Origin: Haliotis cracherodii
Taxonomy: Eukaryota
Reading direction: 5' to 3'
Assembly (NCBI RefSeq): GCF_022045235.1
Contig: NW_027266319.1
Coordinates: 27,590,001 to 27,654,000 of the forward strand
Length of the DNA: 64,000 nucleotides
Shown here piece after piece: positions 17,353 to 59,476 of the stretch. Both the position numbers and the translations under genes were made by a program. The notes under the pieces were generated by a model, which worked only from the letters and a program-made list of their open reading frames with translations, was not told the DNA's origin and did not search any database. Each line of letters starts with the position of its first letter. Position 1 is the stretch's first letter.

Positions 17353-17850
17353 GACACAGTCGGATAGTGTAATGTTAGTGACCAAGTTAGGAGCTACCCC
17401 GTTGGGTTTAACGTCATTTTGAACAGTATGTTCACGATACATGAATATGACGACGTCTTAGCTTAATGTGGGAGAAAAGTTCGACGTGATGCAGATATTT
17501 GCCACTTTGGTGAAACCCAGGACCACGGGTGTGATGCTTACAGACCGCGGTTACATCTGGTAGGTTAACTAGTGACTGGGATCAATGAGTGTCCCATCTC
17601 CAAGTAGTGAATGGGTACCCGGTAGGATTAGGTGACATGTGATTGCTAGCATCCGACATACACTTGAGTTCTCTCCATGGAGATAAAAAATGTCAGTGCA
17701 CATGGATTAATGGTCATTAATTATGGTCCGACACTGACACACCCCTGGAACTCGACCTTGCAAGAGTTGACGCTTAATGACACTGCTTACTTTTATTATT
17801 ATCATGATTGTCATTTGTATCATTATATTTGTATAATTATTATTACCTAC

Positions 17851-18180
17851 CGATGGCATATACGACGCGCTTGCATGGTTCCAGCCAGAGGCAGACATCA
17901 TTCCAGAAGGAGCCGTTGTCGAGTTGTCGTAGTTGAGCTCGCATTGTCCCGCTTTGAAGTTCAAGCTGACGCAGCGAGACTGCTGCAAACATGACGTCAC
18001 ACAGTCCTGTAGGGTGAGGGTCTGAAGCACGAGGTAGACTGACCCCACGAGTCTACTGCCAGCCAGGAGCCCGGGGGTGTTAACCTCTCGACTGCATGTC
18101 CCCGTGACTTGACTCCCCGTGACCTGACCACACCCTGTCATCAGCTCCACAAGCAACATTGTTGTCAGAAAGGTTTTCAT
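17851..18180 (-). CDS. Exon 1 of secreted PAN-EGF-like-kringle protein, paralog B (gene model join 18180-17851, 13140-13056, 10748-10498; 221 aa)
   Basis: Signal-like MKTFLTTMLLVELMTGCG followed by a PAN domain. Phase-0 donor TCG|GTAGGT at 17850. The three exons sum to 666 nt with an open frame. Confidence 0.85.
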
Positions 18181-23933: not shown

Positions 23934-24075
23934 NNNNNNNNNNNNNNNNNNNNNNNNNNNNNNNNNNNNNNNNNNNNNNNNNNNNNNNNNNNNNNNNNNN
24001 NNNNNNNNNNNNNNNNNNNNNNNNNNNNNNNNNNNNNNNNNNNNNNNNNNNNNNNNNNNNNNNNNNNNNNNNNNN
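23934..24075. other. Assembly gap (142 N), within a degenerate family D SINE
   Basis: N run with SINE-D body before it and a (CACCT) tail after it. Confidence 0.97.
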
Positions 24076-25199: not shown

Positions 25200-25452
25200 G
25201 AGTGGTTGTGTGAGTTTGACACCGCAAGGAACACTATTCCAGTTAAATCACGCCGTGTCATCTTAATATTGTAGGAAAGCGCAAAGTGATGCAGGGTTCA
25301 GACGTTTACCACTTCGGAGAAGCACACGGGCACGGGTCCGATGCTGACAAAAAACATCATTTTGGCGAACCGGGATTCGAACCCATGATCATTGCGTGCC
25401 CAAGGGACACAACTCTGCTCAGCGTTTTAGATGAGTGGACCACCCGTGCCCC
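25200..25452 (-). mobile_element. SINE family A (degenerate)
   Basis: Reverse complement match to family A; flanked by CCCTAAACAAGA direct repeats. Confidence 0.82.
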
Positions 25453-26790: not shown

Positions 26791-27227
26791 TCGGTATACT
26801 ATCTGTTATAGACATGTTGAAAGTATGTATTATAGGTATTGACGTCTTACTTATACCCATGCATATGAAAGAAAACAATTGTTGTACAATAAGTATGACC
26901 GTAAAACCATATGTTGAATCAATATCAATCCGCGGTATCACGACGTTCAAAGAAATCATAATTAGAAATGAAGTATTTCACGACTGCTTCAAACGTTATT
27001 CGCGTGCATTTGTCATACTGCAGTTGTATCATATCACAATTAATCTGGAACCACACTTGTTCATATACATGATTATACCCTGAGAATATACTTAGTATAT
27101 ACTACAGCGTTGATGTGTTATTTAAAACAATTTTTATTTTAAAGTTAGCAATGGACTGACTAAGGCTATTTAGTCTATTTTTAGACGGTTTATACTTGAA
27201 TATTTTACAGGAGACCCTAACAATTAC

Positions 27228-27470
27228 CCCGTGAAGATCCGGGGTAGAATAGGTCTTCAGCAACCCGTGCTTGCCGTAAAAGGCACTACAAGTGATAGAG
27301 ATGACTAACGGGATCGGGTGGTCAGACTCGCTGACTTAGTTAATGAATGTCATCGTATCCCAGTTGATCGATACTCATTCACTGGATTGTCTGGTCCAGA
27401 CTCGATTATTTATATACCGCCGTCATACAGCTGGAATATTGCTGAGTGTGCATACAAACAAACGGACAGA
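27228..27470 (+). mobile_element. SINE-like repeat family C
   Basis: CCCGTGAAGATCCGGGGTAGAATAGGTCTTCAGCAACCC head plus family core. Confidence 0.87.
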
Positions 27471-28058
27471 CAAAAAAAGTATATATATTTATCAGTATGC
27501 TAGACAGACATCGACCCCTAGTGATCGCACTCGCTAATAACACAGGTTCCAGTCACGAAATATCATTTGACATTTTGACATATTTAATACTGATACTCAA
27601 ACACTACAAACTATAATAAGTAAAGGATTCATGATTATGCAAAATACGCCACGATGAAATATATCACTGTCTGTCCGAGGACGTGTTGGAGTTCCGTCAT
27701 TATTTGTGTTCATTACAGAAAACTAATATGTACAGACCTGTGAACAAATATTTACAGTAAACATTCCCCTTCCCACGTGGCGGCGATGGCATTACAGTGA
27801 TGGGAGCCGTACATTCTCTGATGCAATTCCAAATAATTCCAACTTACAACTCCACTCGTCATGTGACGTTGTTGTTAAAACATGCAGGCAAGTTCAATCA
27901 AAAGCATTACCGTGACCTTCCAGTGGATGCGATTTCAGCTAACTGTTGCATAACGCTTACTCAAGATGGGCCGCCCGTCGGTCCAGATGGCCTGCCCTGG
28001 TACCGCAACACGCTCACCCCTCCACGGGGGGTCAGGATGTTGGGGTCAGATTCTTGTG

Positions 28059-28100
28059 TATTTATAACTGGCTGACACTGATGGACAATCATATTCAGCT
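28059..28100 (+). promoter_or_regulatory. Putative TATA box + initiator of tropomyosin copy 1
   Basis: TATTTATAA at 28059-28067, then CATATTCAGCTT about 30 nt later. This parallels TATAAAA...CATATTCACTT upstream of copies 2 and 3. Confidence 0.45.
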
Positions 28101-28239
28101 TCTGCCTCCAACAGACAGGTCTATTGCAGCCTCAGTGATTTGTAGCATCGTTATCCTGTGTTGTTTGAGCGTTCTCGACAACTGTAAAACTTTTACTTAC
28201 TATCCCTAGTCTTAGGTTTTTAAAAACTTCCTAGTAGCC

Positions 28240-29094
28240 ATGGACGCCATCAAGAAGAAGATGCTCTCCATGAAGTCCGACAAGGACAACGCACTTGAAA
28301 AATCCGAGATGTTGGAACAGCAACTTAAAGACATTGAGGAACAGAAGGCTAAAGTTGAGGAGGACCTCCACGATCTCCAGAAGAAATTCTCCAATCTCGA
28401 GGTAGAATTTGACAACGTCAACGAGCAGCACCAGGAGGCAAATGCCAAGTTGGAGACATCTACCAAGAGAGTCACCGAGATGGAACAAGAGGTCAGTAGT
28501 ACGTCCTCCAGGGCTACCATGTTAGAGGAAGATCTGGAGAGGTGCGAGGAGAAACTGCAGACAGCCACTATCAAGCTGGAGGAGGCATCCAAGGCTCAGG
28601 ATGAGACGGAGAGGTCACGCAAAGTTCTGGAGAATAAGAGCAGTGCTGACGATGAGCGCATCGATCAGCTAGAAACTCAACTGAAGGACGCTAAGTATAT
28701 CGCCGAGGAAGCTGAAAGAAAGTATGACGAAACTGCCCGTAAGTTAGCCATGACAGATTCCGATCTGGAGCGAGCTGTCACCCGTTTTGAGGCTGCTGAA
28801 ACCAAATCCATTGAACTGGATGAAGAATTGAAGGTCGTTGGAAACAACATGAAGTCCCTTCAGATCAGCGAGCAGGAGGCTTGCCAAAGAGAGGAGACTT
28901 TCGAGGAGACCGTCAAAGACCTGACCCACAAGCTCAAGGAGTCGGAGCACCGCGCTGCGGAGGCTGAGAGGACAGTGTCCAAACTCCAGAAGGACATCGA
29001 CCGCCTGGACGATGAGCTACTTACAGAGAAGGAGAAGAACAAGGCCATCCATGACGAGTTGGACCAGACATTCGCCGAGCTCGCCGGATACTAA
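28240..29094 (+). CDS. Tropomyosin, intronless copy 1 (284 aa)
   Basis: Canonical 284-aa length, MDAIKKKM N-terminus, [22 protein letters not shown]-terminus, continuous heptad repeat, single uninterrupted ORF. Confidence 0.97.
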
Positions 29095-29485
29095 CTGTGA
29101 ATGTGTACTACAGACAGGAAACATACCAGTGTTCTTCAAATCTCCAGTGGATATTTTCTAATGCTGTGACATTGATCTATAAGACCCTGTGCTCAAAAGG
29201 TTAACACTTTTTGTCTACTTTGTGTGATGCTTGTAATTGTCATCTCATGAGTCAGTGATGCCAGTGAAGACTTACTCGGATACAATGGATACCACTGGAG
29301 GCCTGGTTGAACACTCAAGTTTATACTTGAAACTTTGAATCTCACATGAACAATATTAAGCTTTCTTTGATTTTAAATGTACCCAACCACTGCTGAATGT
29401 TGTATATAGCCAAAATTGTATCAACTCATTACAACTATTTATTATTTATACAGTAAGTCTACAGACATTCAACTGTTCATTTGTG

Positions 29486-29491
29486 AATAAA
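29486..29491 (+). terminator. Polyadenylation signal AATAAA of tropomyosin copy 1
   Basis: About 390 nt after the stop. Conserved at the equivalent position in copy 3 (41955-41960, minus strand). Flank homology ends shortly afterwards. Confidence 0.65.
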
Positions 29492-31914
29492 ACCTGGAAG
29501 TCCATAATACAAGTTGTTCATATTTTAAATACGACCTGCCACCCAGTGTGACACCATTACTGTTCACAGCACCTTGTACACACACGTGGCTTTTGTAGTT
29601 TCCAGGAAGTACTAACGGAAATCAATTTCTCGTCAGTGAGTGCATATTGTCTGCCCTTGTCAGCAACTTTACTGCAATATACTGGATGTTATCCCCATCA
29701 GGTGAACCAGCGTGTAAGTTATTTCTTGGTAGGTAAATAAATTATTCATTGTTATATTTTAATTGCTGTTTTAAGAAATCATGTCAATGTTGCTGTTGTT
29801 TCTATTACTTAACTATACTACTTTATATCTTTCCTGAATACAAGTTTTTTAAATCTTATCTAGAAACAAACTGGTCACTATTTTATAGGAACACAGTTTT
29901 TAAGGAACACTCTTGTGGTCTAGAAACTTCACTTTGTGTTGTGGTTTGAGTAATTTAAAAAACATATTTAATATTTGACTTCAAAAACCAGGAACCACAA
30001 CATAAAGTATGTCATAACAGGGCATATCTACAAACTATATCTGTCTGACAAGCACGTGTGGACACATGTACGTGACTTCAGAACACCCGATTGTGATCAC
30101 AGTGCATTAGTATTCCAATGATTATTATTGAGATTATAACTGGGATGTTTCAATGCAGTTTATAAGAAAAATGGGGGCATGGAAATCTAAGTATAATGAA
30201 CATATAATATTACAGAGCGTACTTCCTGTTATCAACGACTTCAATGAAGGGAACGCCCACATTCATCTTCCCAGCCTGTTCAAGGGCTCAGTAGAGCTTT
30301 CAAAATGTGTTATAGTGGACATGGTGGGCGTTTCCAAATTTAAGGCTTCAGTGACAAAATGAAAAGTCTGATGCAATTCCTTAATATTTTAAATTTTACC
30401 AGGCTCCCTTGTTTTGCAGGTCAACAATTTACTTGCCTTTGCATGTTTTTTTGACGGGTGCCACCTGTGCGGCAGAATACGCTTATCTTTTCGCGAACAC
30501 AGGGGAACATCACTATTTGATAGTCATACAAAAAACATTTTTATGATATTGTCGGAATCATACAATGCAGATTTTTTCTGATTATGGAAAGGGTTTTGTC
30601 GCTGTCATTGAACATGTGGGTATTTATGCATTTCATGGCGCGCACGGAATATGCCTCCCTGCCAACGCTTAGAGTACCCACCTTCAATAGAAACACACAT
30701 AGAATTGAAAAAAGAGTATTCTTGTGATATAAAGTTATGCATTAGGTTAAAGATATATATAATCCAAATGAAGCCCAGAAAAAATGCTTAATTTGAGGGC
30801 TGAGCTGAGGCAATCTAGACTTGCCAAATCATTCTAGGTTCGAGTTGGATTCAATTTGTTCTCTTATGTCTGTGAGACAGACTAGAAGACCTATGACAAA
30901 CATGTTATGCATCTGTGAGTTTGGGGCGACAACTACTTGGCAACAGAGGACAACTGGAAGACCCCTTACATCCCTTATACCTGGTAGCAATGACCCACTA
31001 TACAAACCAACGGTACCTCTATTTCCAGAGATAAGTCACAGCATCTTACGTTTATCGGTGATAAATCCAAATACCACGAACCATTTGCGGCAATCCAGGA
31101 GTCTGAACAATGCTAGCATTACTCTTGAATCACACATGTAGGTGCCTATGTATAATGACACTGTGTGAATATTCCTACACGTGTAACAGGACTGGTTATT
31201 AAAGTGATGGTCCTCTGTAATCTTTGCTGCAACTGTTTGTCTGTGTTACAAAATCCGTTTTTTTGTTGTTCCTTCCAGTCTTCGTTTGTTACATAAGGGG
31301 CCGGCAATTTGGTATTCTGTACGGAATCAGCTACAGCTGCAAAACCAGATATTTCAGCTGACACTTTGAGTCTATATATTTCTTTTGAACAAAAAAACTT
31401 GCAACAATGTATTTTGTCAAGCATTTTCTTGGCCAATAATTTCGTCGATAAAATCCCAGATCCCCTCCCCCAGAATATCAAATGACCGGTCCCTAAGTAA
31501 GTGGGGGTGGGGGCAGGGGGTAGTAGCGGGTGGAAAGGGTGGGGGTGATGGTTTATAACCAGCAAACCAGTAGTAGTGCAACCCACACACGTGCTCTGCA
31601 GGGAAGACTGAAGCTTCCACTTGTGTCGTGCTAAATCATGAAGGGACATGAGAAGTAGTCCAAGTGGGTTGTAAACCAGCCGACTTCACCTACTTTAAGA
31701 ATACTCTTGATATTGTGGTGTAAACTATGTGTCTTGCCAAGGATAGCCCAATGTTGTATATCGAATAAACATAAAACGTCAACGACAGAGAATAACACAT
31801 CTCCATTAACTGCCGACTCAGTTCTCCGAAAATCAGTGAGGACACCAGGTCAGCCCTTTATGTACTGATTATTTATCCATAATGACATCTAAGATAGGTG
31901 TCTGGGAATGTGAG

Positions 31915-32094
31915 TATGTGTGTGCGCGTGCGTGCGTGCGTGCGTGCGTGTGTGCGTGCGTGCGTGCGTGCGTGCGTGCGTGTGTAAATAACGCATCAGT
32001 TGCAGTTTGGAATTCGTTTATTTGACTGATATGTTCTATGTAATGAACACTGACACACCACACATACACACACACACACACACGCACGCACACG

Positions 32095-32135
<41 letters not shown>

Positions 32136-32379
32136 ACGTAAAAGGCAAAATAGCGGTGAAAAGTATAATTATGAATTATATGAAAATTATAAGTATATTA
32201 TATAATTAATTTCCTTTAGGATCAAAATTATACATAATTTGAATTGAAATATCAGCAAGCATAAACCATTATGTATATACACACAAACAAAATTTAATTA
32301 AAGAATAACATTTTAAATGTATGTAAGTGGATATGTTCGTTAGTAGGAAAGGGAATGATATCTCAGTGTGAAATATGCA

Positions 32380-32447
<68 letters not shown>
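31915..32447. repeat. Microsatellite cluster: (GCGT)n, (CA)n, (CA)n
   Basis: Directly visible at ~31915-31985, 32055-32137 and 32378-32447. Confidence 0.95.
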
Positions 32448-32449
<2 letters not shown>

Positions 32450-34379
32450 GTCTGATTATTGACATTTTGATGCGTCCCTTTCTTTTTGACCCCAATATGC
32501 ATTGACACGGCACCAAGCTAAGCCAAGATAATTATTTGGTACAATGTAGTCTGTCATGTAGATCATGAAATAAATATATCCATACATCTGTAAAACATAT
32601 CTCAAAATTGTCGAAATGAGTTTACACAAATATGTCTGTCACCAACATCATAACAAAGGTTACTCGTGAAGAGCAAATTCCGAACATGAAATGCCTAGAT
32701 ATATCTATACCATCCATCTTCACGAGAAGGCAATAACATTACTACGTGTACAAGAATATATCAAGTCTGTTGTAAACATGCATAAGATGTTAGCGGGGGC
32801 GGGGTGGGGTGTTGAATGGGTGGGCGGGGAAGTAGGAGGGAGAGGTTCGAGTGGGGGCTGAAGTAAGACGATAAGTGAAGAAGACCCTCTACCCCCTGGA
32901 ATTTTCAGCTGCAGGTGGTATGCACATGTGTTTGTGGGTGATGCATTAAGGTAATGAATTCTTTACGGTTCAAGAGAATCGAGGATTTTGCTTACTCGCG
33001 GTAATGATTATTGCAGCACCGATTGCATAAGATGAGTTAGCTTCTCCTTGTTAATGCCCACATCTGACCGCCGCGTGGGGTGTTGTACGACCGGCGTGCG
33101 GGGTGTTGTATGACCCGCCGTGTTTGCAGGGTGGTGCGCAGCATCAGTGTCAATCCACAATCATAAACTTCAGATTTATGTGTTGGTGATGGGCGTGTTA
33201 GTCGTGCATGGATACTGATTGGCAAAGAGATGCATGTGTTTATTGCCATTGGTTTAGGCAATCTAGATTCCTAAGAATGTTTAAAGAAATGTGCAGTCTT
33301 GCAGTCCCTGAACCATAATATTTACTGTAGTGCCACAGCCCCAAATGAAGCAAGCCTAGATATTTGTCCACAGGTTCAGATATCTCCCATCTCACTGGGG
33401 CTCCTTTTCAATTTGAATGTAGTTGGTTGTTTCTATCAAAATTATATTTTTTCAGTGACTAAGCGTTTGTCTATTCACATTATATCAACATGCATTTATC
33501 ATCTTTCTTCATCGAAATACGTTCTAGATCCGTAAAGATCTACCTCAATATATGTATATGCAATAACGTCATTTAGTACATCCGGATCCTACACGAGTAG
33601 TCATAAAAAAGACAGCAACGCCATCCAGATAACTAATAACGTTAACTTAGACAAATAAAATCGACAAAACCCTTTCCATATACATAAAATAATCTCTGCA
33701 AAAAGCAGAGTTGATTGTACGATTCCGACTATATCACGAGCATGCGTTATGAATCATCATCAAGCAGTGATGATACCACCCTTCCAAAGTAAAACACATG
33801 CTTAAACAACACAAATGGCAAGCCTGGTATTGAAAATACCCCTGTCAAATACACCACAGCAAAGGGCAACATCGTCACAAACGAAACATATGAAACAAAA
33901 TGGTTTATTTCAAAAATTATACTTCAGCACATCGGTCAGATCATTAAAAGTTGCTACGTACATGGTTGAAAGAGCGGTAGTGATGTTTCACATACAGTCA
34001 CGTTAGCTTTGACAATATATCAACACAAGTACTTCATGTATGGTGGCAGCATATGGAGAGTAGTCACTGACATCCCTCGGAGTCAGTAACGAGCACATAT
34101 TGTCCTGGTAGAAACGCCGCTCGGAGCATAGCCTTATGTCACCTGTTGACAAGCACTATTGTAAAGCACATTGTTAGTTCAACCATTTGGGGTTTATGTG
34201 TGTATAGTTGGCAAATGGAAATTGAAATAAATATAAGCATAAATTAACATAAATAAGTGACAAATTTCCTATTCACCGTTATGTCCAAATCTAGTATCCG
34301 ACGAGTACCAGTACAGAAAATATTCATTAGAGGTGTGTAGAACACTGACATCTTTCATGGATGGAATACACATTCACAG

Positions 34380-35234
34380 TTAGTATCCGGCGAGCTCGGC
34401 GAATGTCTGGTCCAACTCGTCATGGATGGCCTTGTTCTTCTCCTTCTCTGTAAGTAGCTCATCGTCCAGACGGTCGATGTCCTTCTGGAGTTTGGACACT
34501 GTCCTCTCAGCCTCCGCAGCGCGGTGCTCCGACTCCTTGAGCTTGTGGGTCAGGTCTTTGACGGTCTCCTCGAAAGTCTCCTCTCTTTGGCAAGCTTCCT
34601 GCTCGCTGATCTGAAGGGATTTCATATTGTTTCCAACGACCTTCAATTCTTCATCCAGTTCAATGGATTTGGTTTCAGCAGCCTCAAAACGGGTGACAGC
34701 TCGCTCCAGATCGGAATCTGTCATGGCTAACTTACGGGCAGTTTCGTCATACTTTCTTTCAGCTTCCTCGGCGATATACTTAGCGTCCTTCAGTTGAGTT
34801 TCTAGCTGATCGATGCGCTCATCGTCAGCACTGCTCTTATTCTCCAGAACTTTGCGTGACCTCTCCGTCTCATCCTGAGCCTTGGATGCCTCCTCCAGCT
34901 TGATAGTGGCTGTCTGCAGTTTCTCCTCGCACCTCTCCAGATCTTCCTCCAACATAGTAGCCCTGGAGGACGTACTACTGACCTCTTGTTCCATCTCGGT
35001 GACTCTCTTGGTAGACGTCTCCAACTTGGCATTTGCCTCCTGGTGCTGCTCGTTGACGTTGTCAAATTCTACCTCGAGATTGGAGAATTTCTTCTGGAGA
35101 TCGTGGAGGTCCTCCTCAACCTTAGCCTTCTGTTCCTCAATGTCTTTAAGTTGCTGTTCAAACATCTCGGATTTTTCAAGTGCATTGTCCTTGTCGGACT
35201 TCATGGAGAGCATCTTCTTCTTGATGGCGTCCAT
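34380..35234 (-). CDS. Tropomyosin, intronless copy 2 (284 aa)
   Basis: Intact ORF that differs from copy 1 by one amino acid (L25F). Confidence 0.97.
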
Positions 35235-35344
35235 GGTTACTTGGTTGGTGGTGAGTCGTAAAACTAAACGGAAAGTACTTTATACTACAAAGTTGTAGAG
35301 ATAATCTCAAGGAGCAGACTGTTGGTTGTTGACGGCGGAAGGCG

Positions 35345-35540
35345 AAAAGTGAATATGCCCTCTCGTTCAATATCGGTCTGTTTTATACCACTGACTTACC
35401 CCCATGTGGTATTATAGACAGGGGTGGTAACCGCCATCTTTGAAACGACCCCCTGCCACGGCGCCAGTGTACCTCTCCCTGTACCGGCGGGGGGTGCATC
35501 TGTTTGAGCATGTGCTCTGCCCGTGTACATCGTCTTATGT
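35345..35540 (-). promoter_or_regulatory. Putative promoter of tropomyosin copy 2 (TATAAAA 35381-35387, YY1-like AAGATGGCGG, E-box CAGATG)
   Basis: Block strongly conserved with 43348-43540 upstream of copy 3. Confidence 0.55.
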
Positions 35541-35544
35541 CAGA

Positions 35545-38170
35545 AGGTATTTTGATGTAAATAATTAAATACTCAAAACTTGGCCACATAATCCTTGGAG
35601 GGGATATCAGTGTCCTCTCAGTATCTGATGATGGATGCATAGATAATAGTAATATTATCCACTTGCCTGATTTTCCTACTGACATAGGGTCCATCATTCA
35701 AACACCAGTGGGCACTAAATAATTTGTTGAACACCAAATGACAGTGCTTCTTGTGAAGCACACATTGATGCCTTCTATGCCGGTATATTATCTCCATTAA
35801 TATAGTGTCAACAGAAGCAGACCTGTATATAAACTGCCTAAAACCCTTGGCATGATAAAGAGGTTTGAACATTATGAAATAAACTTTGGTTATCTAAAAA
35901 ATATAAAAGGTGCAGCCAGTACAAGGGATCTCTTAATCAGGATTTCTTAATCCAGAAAATAATGACCCCATTCAAAACTGTAATGCTATTTTAACTCCTC
36001 AATCAATGCTGAAAGGGTCGTGGAATGTGTTTGATAATTAAAAACAAATAAATCTAATTACAGAGGCATAGCTGCACGCAGTTGTATGGGAAGTTATTAG
36101 TTAGATTATTAATGGAAGAAATGCCAAACACATGGACAATAACTGTATGCATGACATTTCACAGTCTGGATTTAGAAAATGATATCGAGATCTCTGATAT
36201 CAGATTTGTACTCGGAACCCCAATTGTCTCAGCAAAATCGCTATGTTTTGTTAATTTAGAAAAGGCATTTGACACAATAGATAGATCACGTTTGCCTTCT
36301 AAACTTTTATCAGTTGGTGTTTCCAGGAAGGCAATTCATATTAAATATTCGCTTCATGCTGATATTTCATATAGAGTAAATACCAGTAAGGGAGTGTCAC
36401 AAACATTCCTATCTGATATTGGATGAGACAGGGATGTATCTTGTTTCCCACTCTTTTCAACATATTAATACACGATCTTCAGCAACACCTTAATTCTAAG
36501 CAAAATAGTGTAACTCTACATGATCTCAACATTGTCACTGCTTGCGGGTGAGTTTCTATTATTCGTAGACAGCCCACCCAATCTTGATACTCTTCGGGGG
36601 CACGGGTGGCTCAGTCGTCTAAGGCGCCGCGATTCGCTGTGCAGAGTTGAGGCCCTTGGGCATGCCAGAAACCTATGGTTGTGGGTTCGAATCCCGGTTC
36701 GCCCCGATTATGTTTCTAGGTTTGTCAGCACCATACCCGTGCTCGTGTGTTTCACCGAAGTAGTAAACGTCTGAGACCTGCATCACTTCGGCCTTTCCTC
36801 CCACATTAAGCTGACACGCCGTGATCTAACTGGAATACTGTTAAAAGCGGCGTTAAACCCAACTCACTCACTCAATCACTCACTCACTCTCAAAATAGTC
36901 ACTGCTTACGGGTGATTTTCTATTATTCGTAGACAGCCCACCCAATCTTGATACTCCTCGTGTCTTCTGCATTAATAAAAAATAAATGGAGATAAATATA
37001 AAGTTATTATAATTTGCATATTCAGTAATTTGAATGCAAAATATTAACGGTAAAACATTGTGTGATACAAATCATTATAATTATTTTGGAATAATGTTTG
37101 ATCTATCTGAAAGGTTCATCTGGAAAACGCTACATTATTGTTTAAAGAAGGATTGGGAGCATACCACGAACTCCAAACTACCATTTTCAATCAAGATATT
37201 CCAGTACATCAAGCATAAAAACTATTCAAATCATTAACAGAACCTATCATTTAATACCATTTGGGACATTAGTTCAATTCTATGAAACAGATTAACCTAT
37301 ATACTCGTGAAAAACTTAAACTTCTATTCTGCAAATTCAGTGTTTGGGGCCAGTAGAACTACACATAACTGGTCATGCAGAGCAGGGTAAGGTTAATATC
37401 CTCTTCTATATAGTACAATAGCTAAAATGGTAAATTTAACACCTCAAACAATATCATTCTCCGAAACGCTTTTGCTAAGAGTAAATCCCGAATCCTTAGA
37501 AGAATTGTTTATTTGCTGATGGACAAACGCTAAATTAAACACTCAGCATCAACGTCATTATCTGTAGTTGATACCATCCAACAGAAATTCCAAACCCTTA
37601 ATATACATTCTCTTTCAGATGCAGAATCTATGGCTACTGGCGCAGGAGAAAAATAAGAACATGTAGAATAGTAAAAAATGATATTAAGTTAAGACCTCTT
37701 TAAGAATATCTCAAGAAAATATCGTGTTAAGTTGATACTTAGTGACCATTAACTTAAAAGTGAGCTTGGTACACGCACAGCACCGCCTACACCAATCCAT
37801 CAAAGACTCAACTGCTCAAGTGCACATCAGTAGTAGATGATCTAATTCACTGTATAAAACATAGCCAAGATTGAATAGTATTATATAATATTATTAGCTA
37901 ACGAAGTTTCCAAAATAATATACTTACATGAAGATGGCCTGTTCCAACATGCCCTCAATCAATACAATTTGTTAACATGTTTATAATTTCAACCAATAAA
38001 TCCTAATACATCAACATAACCATCTGTAAAATATTTTGTTTTATTCTTGTGTTTTATAAACGCATATTTCATGAGTTTGTGTAAATGTAAATTGTAGCTG
38101 TTTACATTTGCATCTTTTATTTAAGAAATGTATTGCAATATAAATTACCTTATCGTAATTTATCTGAAGA
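35545..38170 (+). mobile_element. ~2.6-kb insertion containing a decayed non-LTR retrotransposon (RT fragment) and a nested SINE
   Basis: RT motifs CFVNLEKAFDTIDR and *RQGCILFPTLFNI at ~36240-36470. Absent from the homologous upstream region of copy 3, which joins the flanks directly (43530-43570). Confidence 0.75.
36596..36888 (+). mobile_element. SINE family A with a 73-bp flanking direct repeat
   Basis: Full-length element. Flanks 36524-36596 and 36888-36960 differ at 5 of 73 positions. Confidence 0.92.
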
Positions 38171-38838
38171 CGGAACTTTCTTACGGAGAAAGTATACATC
38201 AAACGTTGCGCCATTAATGGAGATTATCATAGAGCTATTAAGTAATTACCATCTCATCTTGTGAACATGCGAAGATAAGGTAGCATCTTGCGACATCTGG
38301 GTTACATGACTGTGCACTTTCACCTTCATGGTGGGGGGTGGGAGTGGGGGTGGGTCGTTGGGGAAGGGTTTGCGTGCACCCCCGTGTTTCACACTGAAAC
38401 GGGAGAAGCTTGCAATGTTAACACGTTTCATATGCATATATTCATCAGTAATCAGTTTAGGTTTTTGTATTCGTGGGGTTGTACATGTTTGAAGTACAAT
38501 AGATCTTCTTCCAACATTACAAAGAGCGCCATACAACTCTTGCTCAGAAGTTGTTTGATCAAGGTTACAACTATCATGGCCTCAGTAAACTAGATTTATG
38601 TCAGACATGTGGAGGACATTTCCATGCAATTCCCTATTTTGACTTGTACCATATGCTCCCGGTTGTTTTTAGGTGAACAATTGACTTGTCTTTGCATGTG
38701 TTTGTGGCGGGTGCCAATGTTGGGCAGCATGCGCTCACCTTTTCCCGAACACCTGGTATCATCATATTTGATAGCGATTCATAAACACATGCTAATGATA
38801 CAGTCGGAGTCATATAATCGAATATTTCTTATGACTAC

Positions 38839-39018
38839 GGTTCGCCCGATTATGTTTCTAGGTTTGTCAGCACCATACCCGTGCTCGTGGGTTTCACCGA
38901 AGTGGTAAACGTCTGAGACCTGCATCACTTCGGGCTTTCCTCGGACATTAAGCTGACACGCCGCCATATAACTGGAATACTGTTAAAAGCGGCGTTAAAC
39001 CCAACTCACTCACTCACT
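38839..39018 (+). mobile_element. SINE family A, 5'-truncated
   Basis: 3' half of family A; TSD TCTTATGACTA.GG. Confidence 0.9.
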
Positions 39019-39289
39019 CTTATGACTATGGAAAAGGTTTTGTCTGTTCTGTTTTATTACTTTGCCTGTGGAATGTGATGTTGATGCATCTGGTATACAA
39101 CTTCCAATCAGAATGTGATTCCTTCTAATTGAATGAATCTTTAATTCCCAGACATTCAGAAATAATGTATGTGATTAACAGCTCACACTATTCCTTTTAC
39201 ACGACTATGCCATCTTCCTGGACAGCGGGTCGGTGGAAATCTGAAACTATTACTGATGATGGAATATAGAGCTGATAGTAAAGGATTGA

Positions 39290-41130
39290 AGTCTGACAAA
39301 GCACCCGATATAGATGCTGTTCCTCATGATTTTTATGAAAATACCATGGACATGTAACCGTATTTAACCATATATTTGATCTTGGTGAATTTCCAGAAGA
39401 TGTTGATCCCGCTGTAAAACGAGGTGATGTTGAAAACGTCAACAATTATATTGTACTTTTACTATTAAATAATTTTGGTAAAATTTTCACATCAATTCTG
39501 GAACTTAGACAAAGAACTTTAGTTGAAGTCAACGATACGGTGGCTTAGGAAATAATTACTCTACAACTGATCAAAGTTTCGTTCTCTTTGTTAGAAATCT
39601 CTTAGAAAACCAAACCATATGTTCTAACATTGTATTATTGATTATAAAATAAACGTTGCATCATATGACAGAAATAAGTTATAACTGAGAAGAAAAGGAA
39701 ACTATACCTCACAGTTGATTTGATCATATGTTTGATTTTCATTTTAAAATATCTTAAGTTAGCGAAACATATAGTCAGCACTCAAAGAATATTTCTACAT
39801 GGTTTCATTTATTAAAATAAATTTTCTAAAAAAAAACTTTTTAAAATAGCAAAAATTTGCATTATACACAATGGCTAATATGTACCTTACCCGTTATATC
39901 TGTGACAATTCATAAATTTGCTGCTTGGGGAACAAATTTACAACATTTCAGACAGGGTGGGGTTCATGTGGTTGCAAATTAATAATTATTTCTTACCCCA
40001 GACTTCATTGAACCAGTTAATGTTTACACAAAATTACCCTGCCACAGATTACAATGTACAAACTGTTGCTGGGTGATGGTTAATCGTCTGCAACAATTCT
40101 TTCAATTTTCTATTACATAAAAAACAAAAGAGGTTACATCTTTACGCCTCAGTTTACGTCCTAGTCGACAGGGGCATTCATGGGATAATGTTTATTATAC
40201 TTTAGAATATGTATGAAATTAACAAAACCTGTGCGAGGGTGGGACATGTGAAAACATAAATTTAAAAAACCAACACAGGTGTTATACAAGGTTGCATGTT
40301 TAGTCCAGTTCATTATATTTTTTTGTTATGAAGGGACATGGATTAAGGGGTAATTTTGTAAAAAAAACCAACAACATTTATTTATTTTTGTTGATGATGT
40401 AACTCTTGTTGATGATAGTATAACTGGACGACATAATAAAATAGATGTTTCAGAATCGTATTGCCAACCATTGGGACTAGAGGTTTAATTTCGACCAAAA
40501 TAGTAGTTTTAGAAATAGTGGTTACTTAAAAATTATGTAGCAACGGTTTAATAAAGGTTCTCAAGTTAAAGTAGCACCATGCTCTAAATATCTTGGCATA
40601 TTATTTTCTTGAAGACCTGTCTGGACTAAACCTTGTGATACTCTATCTCTTCAAGCAAGGAAAGCATCTATCCCAGCCTTCATCAGGTTGAAACATACTC
40701 TCTACCAATATAACTGCTGCTAAAATATTTGAAGCAATGCTGCTCCTGTTATTTTTGCTATGTTTCAGAAATCTGGGTATACAACTAGAGAAGAAATATT
40801 GAAAAGGTTCACCTCAAGTCCTTTAAAAGGTATATTTCTGTTGCAAAAAGAAGCTCCACAAATGCTATTTGGGTGAACTTGGAAGAACTCCCTTATGTGT
40901 AAATTATTATAGTCGTTCTGTTACATATCGGTGTAGATTCAGTGAAAATAGATATCCTGGAAGCTTTTGACGACAATGGTAAAACAAATAAGATTACCAT
41001 TATTTCAACTGGGTTTTCATGTGTATACATTTCTCAAAACTGTGGCGATTTAAATTGTATCAATGCTTTTTTTTAACAACGATAAAACGATTTCAAAACT
41101 GTCATTAATTGTTACAAATTCGTCTCTTGC
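39290..41130 (+). mobile_element. Heavily decayed LINE ORF2 (RT) remnant, interrupted by a dispersed repeat at ~39700-40130
   Basis: Fragments FNHIFDLGEFPE, LLNNFGKIFTSIL, TGVIQGCMFSP, FFVDDVTLV and KYLGI in RT order, with many stops and frameshifts. Confidence 0.75.
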
Positions 41131-41522
41131 ATGTATATTCGTCTCATAAAACGCCACTCGTACCATAGAGACCTGTCTATTTAGCCCCGGAAAGAGATCT
41201 CCGAACAACTTCATGTTGATTTGTCCATTTAAGAAACAAAGAGAGAAAGCAGAGAAATTATATGAATGAATCACTGTCAATCAGTGTTGACACCAGGTGT
41301 TCATTGAAAGGGTAAGCATGGCCTGTCCTACCAGTAGCGCCCGTCATGTCTTTGTACTCATGGGTGCTGTTAACCGTTAGAATCCAGTGGTGGTATAACT
41401 GTTGCTACTGGTAGGGCAGGACATGCTTACCATTTCCGCGGACACCTGGTGTCATCACCTATTTTCAGTGATCCATTCATATAGTTTTTACCGCTATTTT
41501 TCCTTTTACACTCAATGGAATC

Positions 41523-41830
41523 GACCGCCTCCGTGGTCTAGTGGTAGAGCGTCCGCCCGGAGAGCGGAAGGTCCGGGGTTCGATCCCCGACTGCGTCATA
41601 CCAAAAGACGTTAAAAGATTGTACTTATTGTTACCCTGTCTGGCGCTCGGCATTAAGGGGCTAAAGCAAGGACTGGTCGGCTCGGAGTCAGTATACTGTG
41701 TCTGAGTTATGCTAGCTGCATAAATCGGCATCAGTCCGGACTAGTACAAGCAGCCACACATACACGTCGCTATATAAGTGCAATAATCTTGGACGCGACG
41801 TTAAACCCAATTTCACCTCACCTCACCTCA
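41523..41830 (+). mobile_element. tRNA-derived SINE family D, full length
   Basis: A box TGGTCTAGTGG, B box GGTTCGATCCC, central GTCATACCAAAAGACGTTAAAAGAT.GTACT...GGCGCTCGGCATTAAGGG, (CACCT)n tail, TSD CTCAAT.GAATC. Confidence 0.92.
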
Positions 41831-41954
41831 ATAGAATCTGTTTCGTCGGCTAATCGAGACTGGTTATTCTCTGGTGTTGACGTTGTATATTTATACACCT
41901 GAGTGCCAGGTGGAATGCCAAATTATGAACAACTTGGTTTATGGACGTGCAGGT

Positions 41955-41960
41955 TTTATT
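41955..41960 (-). terminator. Polyadenylation signal AATAAA of tropomyosin copy 3
   Basis: Positional homolog of 29486-29491. Confidence 0.65.
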
Positions 41961-42351
41961 CACAAATGAACAAACGCATGTCTATTGACACACTGAATAA
42001 ATAATAAATAGTTGTAATGAGTTGATACAATTTTGGCTATTTACAACATTCAGCAGTGGATGGGTACATTTAAAATCAAAGAAAGCTTTATATTGTTCAT
42101 GTGAGATTCAAAGTTTCAAGTATAAACTTGAGTGTTCAACCAGGCCTCCAGTGGTATCCATTGTATCCGAGCAAGTAATCACTGGCATCACTGACTCATG
42201 AGATGACAATTACAAGCATCACACAAAGTAGACAAAAAGTGTTAACCTTTTGAGCACAGGGTCTTATAGATCAATGTCACAGCATTAGAAAATATCCACT
42301 GGAGATTTGAAGAACACTGGCATGTTTCCTGTCTGTAGTACACATTCACAG

Positions 42352-43206
42352 TTAGTATCCGGCGAGCTCGGCAAATGTCTGGTCCAACTCGTCATGGATG
42401 GCCTTGTTCTTCTCCTTCTCTGTAAGTAGCTCATCGTCCAGGCGGTCGATGTCCTTCTGGTGTTTGGACACTGTCATCTCGGCCTCCGCTGCGCGGTGCT
42501 CCGACTCCTTGAGCCTTTGAGTCAAGTCTGCGATGGTCTCCTCAAACGTCCCTTCTCTCTGGCAAGCCTCCTGCTCGCTGATCTGAAGGGACTTCATGTT
42601 GTTTCCAACGACCTTCAATTCTTCATCCAGTTCAATGGTTTTGGTTTCAGCAGCCTCAAAACGGGTGACAGCTCGCTCCAAATCGGAATCTGTCAGGGCT
42701 AACTTACGGGCAGTTTCGTCGTACTTACTTTCAGCTTCCTCGGCGATATGTTGAGCATCCTTCAGTTGATTTTCTAGCTGATCAATGCGCTCATCGTCAG
42801 CAATGTTCTTGTTTTCCAGAACTTTGCGTGACCTCTCCGTCTCATCCTGAGCCTTGGATGCCTCATCCAGCTTGATAGTGGCTGTCTGCAGTTTCTCCTC
42901 GCACCTCTCCAGATCTTCCTCCAATGTGGTAGCCCTGGAGGACGTACTACTGACCTCTTGTTCCATCTCGGTGACTTTCTTGGTCGACGTCTCCAACTTG
43001 GCATTGACCTCCTGGTGCTGCTCGTTAACGTTGTCAAATTCTACCTCGAGGTTGGAAAATTTCTTCTGGAGAGCATGGAGGTCCTCCTCAACCTTAGCCT
43101 TCTGTTCCTCGATGTCTCTAAGTTGCTGTTCCAACATCTCGGCATTTTCAAGCGCGCTGTCCTTGTCGGACTTCATGGAGAGCATCTGCTTCTTGATGGC
43201 GTCCAT
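42352..43206 (-). CDS. Tropomyosin, intronless copy 3 (284 aa, ~91% aa identical to copy 1)
   Basis: Intact ORF with 25 aa differences from copy 1 by manual alignment. Confidence 0.96.
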
Positions 43207-43347
43207 GGCTAGTTTGAAGGTGTTGTGGCGTAAAATGAAACGGAGAGTAGTTTAGATTACAAAGTTGTAGAGATAATCTTAACAACCGAGCGACGTATTG
43301 CTTATTCAGGTCAGAACTGAGAGCGGACTGTTGGTTGTTGACGGCGG

Positions 43348-43540
43348 AAAGTGAATATGGCCTCTCGTTTATATCGGTCTGTTTTATACTACAGACTGAA
43401 CCGCATGTGGTATTACAGACAGAGATGGTCAGCGCCATCTTTGAAACGACCCCCTGCCACTGCGCCAGTGTACCTCTCCCTGTACCGGCGGGGGGTGCAT
43501 CTGTTAGACCATGTGCTCTACCCGAGTACATCGTCTTCTT
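43348..43540 (-). promoter_or_regulatory. Putative promoter of tropomyosin copy 3 (TATAAAA 43382-43388)
   Basis: Conserved with 35345-35540. Confidence 0.55.
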
Positions 43541-44393
43541 ATATCATTACATGGATATTTCTTACGGAGAAAGTATACATCAAACGTTGCACCATTAATG
43601 GAGAATATCACAGCGCTATTAAGTAATTATCATCTCCACCTGTGTACATACGAGGATTGGGTAGCACCCATGCGACATCTGGATTACGGAGCGGCTGTTG
43701 GGTCCCCGGGGCGGGTTGGGTCCCCGTGGTTCACACTGAAACGGGAGATGTCTGTAATAGTATATGTTTTCTTTTTCATATATTCAGTAGGTTTCTGTTT
43801 TCGTAGGTTTTGTGCATGTTGTATGTGAAGGTGTATCTTTGTTGTTTGTTGTTTAACGCCGCACTCAGAAATATTCAAGCTATATGACGGCGGTTTATAA
43901 ATAATCGAGTCTGGACCAGACATCCCAGTGAGTGTGATCACGAGCATCGATCTACGCAATTGGAGTTGGTGTATGTGGTGTACCACTTCCATGCTTCTAA
44001 TCCAGTAAATCTTCTTTAATTCCCACTCATTCAGAAAAATACATTTGATTCACAACTGAGAATATTCCTTTTACACGACTATATATCTTTAAGACTGCCC
44101 CCTTGGTCTGGGGGATAGAGCCTCTGACGTCTGGCCGGATAAAGGAAGGTCACTGGAGACTTTTAACCCCAGTTCACCTCACCTCACCTATACGTTCAGA
44201 AAAGAAAAGCACTTCAAAGTCGAAAACAAACAAAATATACAAGCAAACTCGAAAAGTAAAAACTGACATCTGTTTTATAGAACAAAAAACATATATTTAA
44301 CTTAAATTTATTCTATTTATACTATGTTATACACCACAGTATAATCATTTCAGCATGAAAAACCCAGTTTTTTTCTTTGCCGTAGATTTAGAA

Positions 44394-45943: not shown

Positions 45944-46224
45944 GGGGGCACGGGTGGCCCAGTCGTCTAAGGCGCCGCGATTCGCTGTGCAGAGTCGCGT
46001 CCCTTAGGCACGCCTGAAACCTATGAGTGTGGGTTCGAATCCCGGTTCGCCCCGATTATGTTTCTAGGTTTGTCAGCACCATACCCGTGCTCCTGGGTTT
46101 CACCGAAGTGGTAAACGTCTGAGACCTGCATCACTTCGGCCTTTCCTCCCACATTAAGCTGACACGCCGTGATATGACTGGAATACTGTTAAAAGCGGCG
46201 TTAAACCAGACTCACTCACTCACT
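45944..46224 (+). mobile_element. tRNA-derived SINE family A, full length
   Basis: A box TGGCCCAGTCG, B box GGTTCGAATCC, V-domain-like CTTTCCTCCCACA, (ACTC)n tail, TSD CT.TATGACAT. Confidence 0.92.
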
Positions 46225-59320: not shown

Positions 59321-59476
59321 NNNNNNNNNNNNNNNNNNNNNNNNNNNNNNNNNNNNNNNNNNNNNNNNNNNNNNNNNNNNNNNNNNNNNNNNNNNNNNNN
59401 NNNNNNNNNNNNNNNNNNNNNNNNNNNNNNNNNNNNNNNNNNNNNNNNNNNNNNNNNNNNNNNNNNNNNNNNNNNN
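59321..59476. other. Assembly gap (156 N)
   Basis: N run. Confidence 0.98.

Follow-up and report, generated by a model that had tools for sequence, protein, structure and literature searches.

The locus: three intact, intronless tropomyosin genes

The stretch of DNA analysed here (64,000 nucleotides (nt) of the abalone Haliotis cracherodii, NCBI RefSeq assembly GCF_022045235.1, contig NW_027266319.1, positions 27,590,001 to 27,654,000 of the forward strand; hereafter the window, within which positions are counted unless a contig is named) carries exactly three tropomyosin genes that are single open reading frames (ORFs) of 284 codons from ATG to stop: copy 1 at 28240-29094 on the forward strand, and copies 2 and 3 at 34380-35234 and 42352-43206, both on the reverse strand. 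The presence in an abalone genome of three intron-free copies of a fast-evolving tropomyosin, all intact and apparently transcribed, is a real finding, and it represents an ordinary kind of gene birth. Taken as a whole, the evidence is probably best explained by a small family of functional retrogenes of the abalone lineage, which would have been retroposed, then amplified as DNA, homogenised by gene conversion and kept under purifying selection.

All three copies match the Pfam family Tropomyosin (PF00261) with E-values of 1e-69 to 1e-76 and scores of 231-255 bits (cut-off, 38.6 bits), the profile match spanning residues ~45-283 in each of them, and the three proteins are 91-99.6% identical to one another. 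The coding sequences (CDS) each consist of 284 codons plus stop; copy 3 is present as an exact protein in NCBI. Between copies 1 and 2 there are 10 differences in 855 nt, nine synonymous and one nonsynonymous (L25F), which agrees with the estimate made by eye in an earlier note on this DNA. The copy 3 CDS differs from that of copy 1 at 54 nt and from that of copy 2 at 58 nt. A whole-genome search found no further intronless copies.

Each copy is flanked by putative expression signals, namely a TATA-like box 153-182 nt 5' of the ATG, an initiator-like motif common to all copies (CATATTCA) 123-153 nt 5' of the ATG, and an AATAAA 392-471 nt 3' of the stop. The candidate core promoter of copy 1 lies at 28061-28097 (+), with TTTATAA at 28061 and CATATTCA at 28090 (179 and 150 nt 5' of the ATG, respectively), and the 3' untranslated region (UTR) of this copy extends over 29095-29500 (+), with AATAAA at 29486. 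For copy 2, the 5'UTR and promoter occupy 35235-35536 (-), with TATAAA at 35387 and CATATTCA at 35357, and the 3' region occupies 33909-34379 (-), with AATAAA at 33909. The copy 3 5'UTR, promoter and the upstream DNA that it has in common with copy 2 cover 43207-44082 (-), with TATAAA at both 43388 and 43373 and CATATTCA at 43359, and its 3'UTR covers 41899-42351 (-), with AATAAA at 41960. The earlier description of three full-length, single-ORF tropomyosins of 284 residues, none of them disabled and each with a candidate TATA box and initiator upstream, was accurate in every detail that was checked.

An intron-containing parent and the probable copying of one spliced muscle mRNA

Tropomyosin is a textbook case of a gene that owes its isoform diversity to alternative splicing. 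A whole-genome six-frame search revealed only one other tropomyosin locus, at G000:C1:39291139-39322008, and exon-by-exon reading resolved it into nine coding exons (residues 1-38, 39-80, 81-125, 126-164, 165-188, 189-213, 214-234, 235-257 and 258-284) separated by GT-AG introns at conserved bilaterian positions. The gene has mutually exclusive exons 4a/4b/4c, 5a/5b, 6a/6b and 9a/9b, the alternative-exon stretches being located at 39306950-39308124, 39310226-39310431, 39314523-39314773 and 39319353-39322008 of contig C1. Exon 4b is 90% identical to its oyster counterpart and exon 4c is 87% identical to that of octopus; the alternative exons are therefore ancient. Conservation is generally high for the canonical gene, with exons 4b, 6b, 7, 8 and 9b being 90-100% identical across abalone, oyster, mussel and octopus. 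The C1 exons are letter-identical within the annotated protein "tropomyosin isoform X7 [Haliotis cracherodii]", itself identical to H. rufescens isoform X8, and many canonical isoforms are annotated in three abalone species. The Pacific abalone tropomyosin of PMC9858658 is likewise this canonical gene, enriched in heart and muscle, and not a member of the intronless family. Hence, the intron-containing parent that the earlier note placed elsewhere in the genome does exist, on contig C1, with the copies on contig C56.

To compare the two loci, the C1 exons were taken one at a time against the intronless CDS and the counts summed, with no joined spliced model. The alignment is gapless over all 284 codons, and all eight coding introns are absent from the copies. 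At every position with alternatives the best match is the muscle-type exon, i.e., 4b (82% identity, vs. 67% for 4c and 51% for 4a), 5b (67%), 6b (84% vs. 48% for 6a; tblastn) and 9b (89% vs. 42% for 9a, with 24/27 residues of the exon 9b region identical), a combination that corresponds to a single mature splice isoform. Identity to exon 2 is 71-76%, and identity to the muscle exon combination overall is ~72-75% (211/283 residues for copy 1 and 205/283 for copy 3). Summed over exons, the proportion of synonymous differences (pS) is 0.83, which is saturated, and the nonsynonymous divergence (dN) is 0.17-0.19; at the DNA level, BLAST finds the copies similar to the parent in exon 3 only, up to the exon edges.

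A gapless muscle-type match, the joint absence of all introns and of all other exons, and a location on another contig are together what a retrocopy of a single mature mRNA would be expected to show. We propose that the family derives from a fully spliced muscle mRNA (exons 1-2-3-4b-5b-6b-7-8-9b) of the C1 gene, which would have been reverse-transcribed and integrated into contig C56, where the retrocopy would have come under a TATA/initiator promoter. Alternatively, a DNA duplicate of the canonical gene may have moved to another chromosome and lost its eight coding introns later, e.g., by recombination with cDNA. This route would account for the lack of an A-tail or target-site duplication and for the presence of a proper TATA/initiator promoter, which a fresh retrocopy would lack. 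It would, however, need eight introns and all non-muscle alternative exons to have gone together without leaving a remnant, the copies retain no similarity to the parent in promoter or UTRs, and they lie on another contig. A single retroposition is simpler than a history in which eight introns and no fewer than five alternative exons were lost, and we consider the intron-loss route unlikely.

Age and distribution of the family

Several residues tie the intronless copies to the abalone lineage. The start of exon 3, MEQEVS.T, is common to the intronless copies and abalone and differs in every other mollusc sampled, and IDQLE in exon 4b is common to the intronless copies, abalone and Patella only. 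Of 203 comparable residues, 154 are the same in copy 1 and the abalone canonical protein, against 144 for the best of 12 other lophotrochozoans. In a maximum-likelihood (ML) tree of 115 columns, built for exons 3, 7, 8 and 9b from real database isoforms (P0342 and others), the intronless proteins form a clade with support of 100/100 on a stem of 0.28 substitutions per site, compared with 0.02-0.05 for most mollusc canonical branches (those of Mytilus, at 0.15, and Octopus, at 0.25, are longer). Their divergence far exceeds that seen in the canonical exons between entire mollusc classes (90-100% identity, see above). These residues and the tree give moderate support to an origin in the abalone (vetigastropod) lineage, with a roughly tenfold rise in the rate of protein evolution thereafter. 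Under this scenario, the retrogene protein would have evolved about ten times faster than its near-frozen parent, keeping the 284-residue heptad pattern and both ends.

Searched exhaustively with HMMER, 1.84 billion cluster representatives yielded no close relative outside Haliotis, and neither did 5.8 billion proteins, with the proviso that the word-indexed protein search also returned no canonical 284-residue mollusc muscle tropomyosin, only N-terminally extended isoforms, and its blanks are not to be over-read. With residues 1-80 as the query, only the family's own cluster was matched. The cluster formed at 90% identity around the exact copy 3 protein adds one sequence, XP_046359425.2, "tropomyosin-like [Haliotis rufescens]", a name that is automatic only. 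This protein differs from copy 3 at 6/284 residues, carries the copy 3 state at 23 of the 25 sites that distinguish copies 1 and 3, and groups with copy 3 in the ML tree (91/92); it is the copy 3 ortholog. The split between the copy 3 type and the copy 1/2 type therefore predates both species.

These data also bear on the idea that the copies represent an ancient, independently intronless paralog, older than the mollusc classes and kept only in abalones. Saturated synonymous sites would fit such an age, as would an identity to the parent of ~72-75%, when canonical C-terminal exons are 90-100% identical across mollusc classes. Yet the copies have the abalone-specific residues of exon 3, are closest to the abalone's own gene among the lineages sampled, are placed beside the abalone canonical tropomyosin by the tree, and have no member outside Haliotis in the searches above, and the divergence is consistent with a tenfold rate acceleration. 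We view an ancient paralog as quite improbable.

Duplication as DNA, followed by gene conversion

Which two copies are the most similar depends on the segment considered. In the upstream DNA, identity is 86% between copies 2 and 3 and 69% between copies 1 and 3, the latter over 149 colinear columns spanning the promoter and 5'UTR (z 4.5, above all 300 shuffles), and the similarity between copies 1 and 2 is not significant on its own there (z 2.4). In the CDS, the closest pair is copies 1 and 2 (98.8%, vs. 93.7% for 1-3 and 93.2% for 2-3), and the homology of this pair is confined to -10..+65 around the CDS. Over the 3'UTR, identity between copies 1 and 3 is 93%, the similarity reaching ~60 nt beyond the AATAAA, and copy 2 is homologous to the others for the first 65 nt only, none being detectable between copy 2 and either copy 1 or copy 3 beyond +65 (z about 0). 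The tracts end abruptly, at -10/-13 and +65. Copies 2 and 3 remain homologous to at least 880 bp 5' of the ATG, the homology being interrupted in copy 2 by an insertion of ~2.6 kb (35537-38176) relative to copy 3; past this insertion it resumes at 38177-38305, 38380-38444 and 39122-39208.

The common promoter and upstream DNA mean that the copies arose by DNA duplication, not by separate retrocopying: all three descend from one unit that already bore the promoter. The groupings of upstream DNA (2+3), CDS (1+2) and 3'UTR (1+3) are mutually incompatible and meet at sharp boundaries, and thus gene conversion repeatedly homogenised the coding regions, leaving a mosaic. In order, a promoter-5'UTR-CDS-3'UTR unit was duplicated as DNA into three linked copies, which then underwent conversion. 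A separate retroposition of each copy was considered and rejected, given the common promoter and upstream DNA and the exclusion of the UTRs from the copy 1-2 homology. An origin of copies 1 and 2 as the arms of a decayed inverted duplication was also rejected, their 3' flanks being without similarity. Hence, of the earlier suggestion that a retrogene was amplified locally under purifying selection, the amplification and the selection (see below) stand, and the process is specified as duplication of DNA carrying the promoter, with subsequent conversion, as opposed to repeated retroposition.

The DNA around the copies is rich in repeats. A dispersed repeat of ~190-280 bp occurs in four copies that are 74-94% identical (25211-25452, 36596-36877, 38838-39026 and 45944-46222), two of which are stated to sit within the 2.6-kb insertion upstream of copy 2; the insertion holds dispersed repeat copies. 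Two further dispersed repeats, at 27170-27503 and 30343-30843, are of very high copy number (summed word depth of 1e5-1e7 in all four sequencing runs considered below), show many joints and loose ends, and are probably SINE-like. A 73-bp piece of the former (27376-27448) recurs upstream of copy 3, at 43862-43934. Between the convergent copies 1 and 2, the self-similar matches in 31926-32447 are due to microsatellites, (GCGT)14, (AC)43 and (CA)33.

Purifying selection and evidence of expression

The copies are under purifying selection. The ratio of nonsynonymous to synonymous divergence (dN/dS) is 0.03 between copies 1 and 2, 0.22 between copies 1 and 3, and 0.20 between copies 2 and 3. Among the 11 CDS variants with the best support in contigs of related abalones, 10 are synonymous. 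Further, the ORFs have remained intact despite saturated synonymous divergence from the parent. The purifying selection postulated previously is thereby borne out by both the comparison of copies (0.03-0.22) and the interspecies variants (10/11).

Four sequencing runs from related organisms cover all or part of the copy 1 locus. Runs X10 and X11 (organism C) have the character of genomic DNA: they cover the whole 5-kb stretch at even depth with 94-98% identity and bridge both flank junctions of copy 1, and their CDS contigs are of two types, one near-identical and the other 8% different; the two types fit a relative that holds both the copy 1/2 type and the copy 3 type. DNA contigs from a related abalone also carry a small insertion at 28205-28207, in the copy 1 5'UTR, where the transcript-like contigs described next stop aligning. 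In runs X1 and X4 (organisms A and B), coverage is limited to ~28208-29500, that is, the CDS and 3'UTR, at a word depth of 140-1900, and unique flanks have a depth of 0 in X1 and at most 2.4 in X4, with the two high-copy repeats set aside. The X1/X4 contigs break at 28208-28233, near the indel in the relative's DNA, and end at 29496-29500, 10-14 nt after the AATAAA at 29486. This transcript-shaped coverage in relatives' runs is good, albeit indirect, evidence that the copies are expressed, and they would be transcribed into an mRNA of ~1.4 kb.

It could be argued that the copies are non-functional processed pseudogenes, or duplicates created by the assembly, whose frames are open by chance, since the collection has no annotated protein that exactly matches copy 1 or copy 2, and the RNA evidence is indirect. 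Three 855-nt ORFs that are intact despite saturated synonymous divergence, dN/dS of 0.03-0.22, synonymous variants in 10 of 11 interspecies cases and transcript-shaped coverage in two runs speak against the former. As for the latter, assembly artefacts, which the earlier note had named as a way in which its proposal could fail, are countered by several observations: the flanks are distinct and the orientations opposite, the copy 1 junctions are bridged in another abalone, and copy 3 has a separate ortholog in H. rufescens; therefore, the copies are not artefacts. The pseudogene or artefact explanation is already largely refuted, and very little probability can be assigned to it.

The encoded protein

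Relative to the parent, substitutions have affected 22% of a/d core positions, 28-30% of e/g positions and 26-29% of the b/c/f surface. Apolar residues occupy 61 of the 82 a/d positions (65/82 in the parent), and the heptad coiled coil is unbroken over 284 residues. New polar or unusual core residues include H64, C102, Q120, S/T190, S235 and N267, as well as H249 in copy 3. Both ends that form the head-to-tail overlap are conserved, i.e., the N-terminal MDAIKKKM and the C-terminal 13-residue end within the exon 9b region. Judging from these features, the most likely product is a dimeric coiled coil with a changed surface, which would still assemble into polymers on actin filaments. Such an actin-filament-binding dimer with an altered surface would serve some particular tissue, stage or partner context.

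A more specific version of the above hypothesis is an abalone-specific, neofunctionalised tropomyosin with a remodelled actin- or partner-binding surface and a slightly destabilised core, employed in one tissue or stage, encoded by copies kept for dosage and possibly an allergen variant. We regard this version as speculative and rather doubtful. If true, candidate settings would be gonad/sperm, larva or specialised muscle, and the three copies would have been kept by selection for dosage.

Weighing the retrogene interpretation

A number of observations weigh against the interpretation of the copies as functional retrogenes of abalone origin. An A-tail or target-site duplication was looked for at the three copies and none was found, and UTR homology of the retrogene to the parent was not significant (best z 3.4, below the shuffle maximum); the retroposition event is hence deduced from the structure of the gene and not seen directly. 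These hallmarks would not be expected to outlast the time implied by saturated synonymous sites, nor the subsequent duplication and conversion of the DNA, and their absence is neutral with respect to retroposition. The sister placement with abalone canonical tropomyosin has support of 77/79 on 115 columns, and long-branch effects are possible. The protein search returned no H. asinina member, though canonical isoforms of this species are in the collection, and copies 1 and 2 are absent from the protein collection as exact sequences; the latter absence, of genes that are plainly in the genome, means that absence from annotation proves little. For expression, the RNA type of X1 and X4 was guessed by a tool and the runs come from related organisms, not H. 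cracherodii; the transcript-like contigs also leave the predicted 5'UTR of copy 1 (28090-28207), whose start site is only a prediction, uncovered. Finally, core and surface were hit about equally, a pattern that also fits partly relaxed constraint.

Hence, the earlier proposal that a spliced muscle-type mRNA was retrotransposed is supported as far as the muscle exon combination and the intron-bearing parent are concerned, and is left without detectable A-tail or target-site duplications. A last element of that proposal, that isoform diversity in this animal comes from gene copies instead of alternative splicing, does not hold and has next to no likelihood, even with three extra genes in existence, since the parent keeps the full set of alternative exons (4a/4b/4c, 5a/5b, 6a/6b and 9a/9b), with many annotated isoforms in three abalone species, and the near-identical intronless proteins (91-99.6%) add one divergent protein type, not a repertoire.

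Comparison with known systems helps to place the retrogene family. Compared with canonical mollusc muscle tropomyosin, the intronless proteins have the same length, a gapless alignment, both ends, the muscle exon combination and the PF00261 match, but they are only ~72-75% identical, have a stem about ten times longer and extra polar or unusual core residues, and are encoded without introns behind their own promoter on another chromosome. Like functional retrogenes of other animals, they are intronless copies of a multi-exon parent located elsewhere, correspond to one splice isoform, are apparently transcribed, and went through accelerated protein evolution and then purifying selection. Unlike those retrogenes, the abalone family is too old for A-tails or target-site duplications and was amplified as DNA to three members with a common promoter. 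A TSSK1-like retrogene has reportedly been described in Pacific abalone. The disagreement among segments about which copies are closest, with sharp tract boundaries, is also typical of linked families under concerted evolution; however, this family has only three members, two of them in inverted orientation, and the older split between copy 3 and copies 1/2, which is common with red abalone, has not been erased. The literature searched, which did not extend to key comparative gene-evolution work, gives no description of an intronless abalone tropomyosin, whether of its structure, origin, copy number or expression.

Neighbouring features

Elsewhere in the window, ORFs at 1672-2040 (-) and 17710-18180 (-) have matches to PAN/apple domains (E about 1e-5). 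A 167-residue ORF between copies 1 and 2, at 31146-31649 (-), matches no Pfam family and probably does not represent a gene. No Peptidase_S26-like (IMMP2L) exon was confirmed within the window; a Peptidase_S26-like single exon (26.8 bits), possibly IMMP2L-like, lies at G000:C56:27769590-27769694, ~115 kb past the window end. Runs of N occupy 23934-24075 and 59321-59476.

Significance

Functional retrogenes are well known, as are tandem amplification and gene conversion, and the present locus is a clean, well-supported case of them that would not surprise a specialist. The picture of tropomyosin diversity as based on splicing is not overturned. For abalone annotation, the results show that two of the three copies are missing from the protein collection. 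The family is also relevant to work on muscle and to proteomics that takes tropomyosin to be encoded by one gene, and it may be relevant to allergen diagnostics. If the neofunctionalised version were true, the family could also represent an allergen variant of abalone that has gone unrecognised, with identity to the canonical allergen of only ~73%. More generally, muscle tropomyosin is near-invariant across molluscs, and one spliced isoform that escaped as a retrogene would therefore offer a natural experiment on which of its residues can change.

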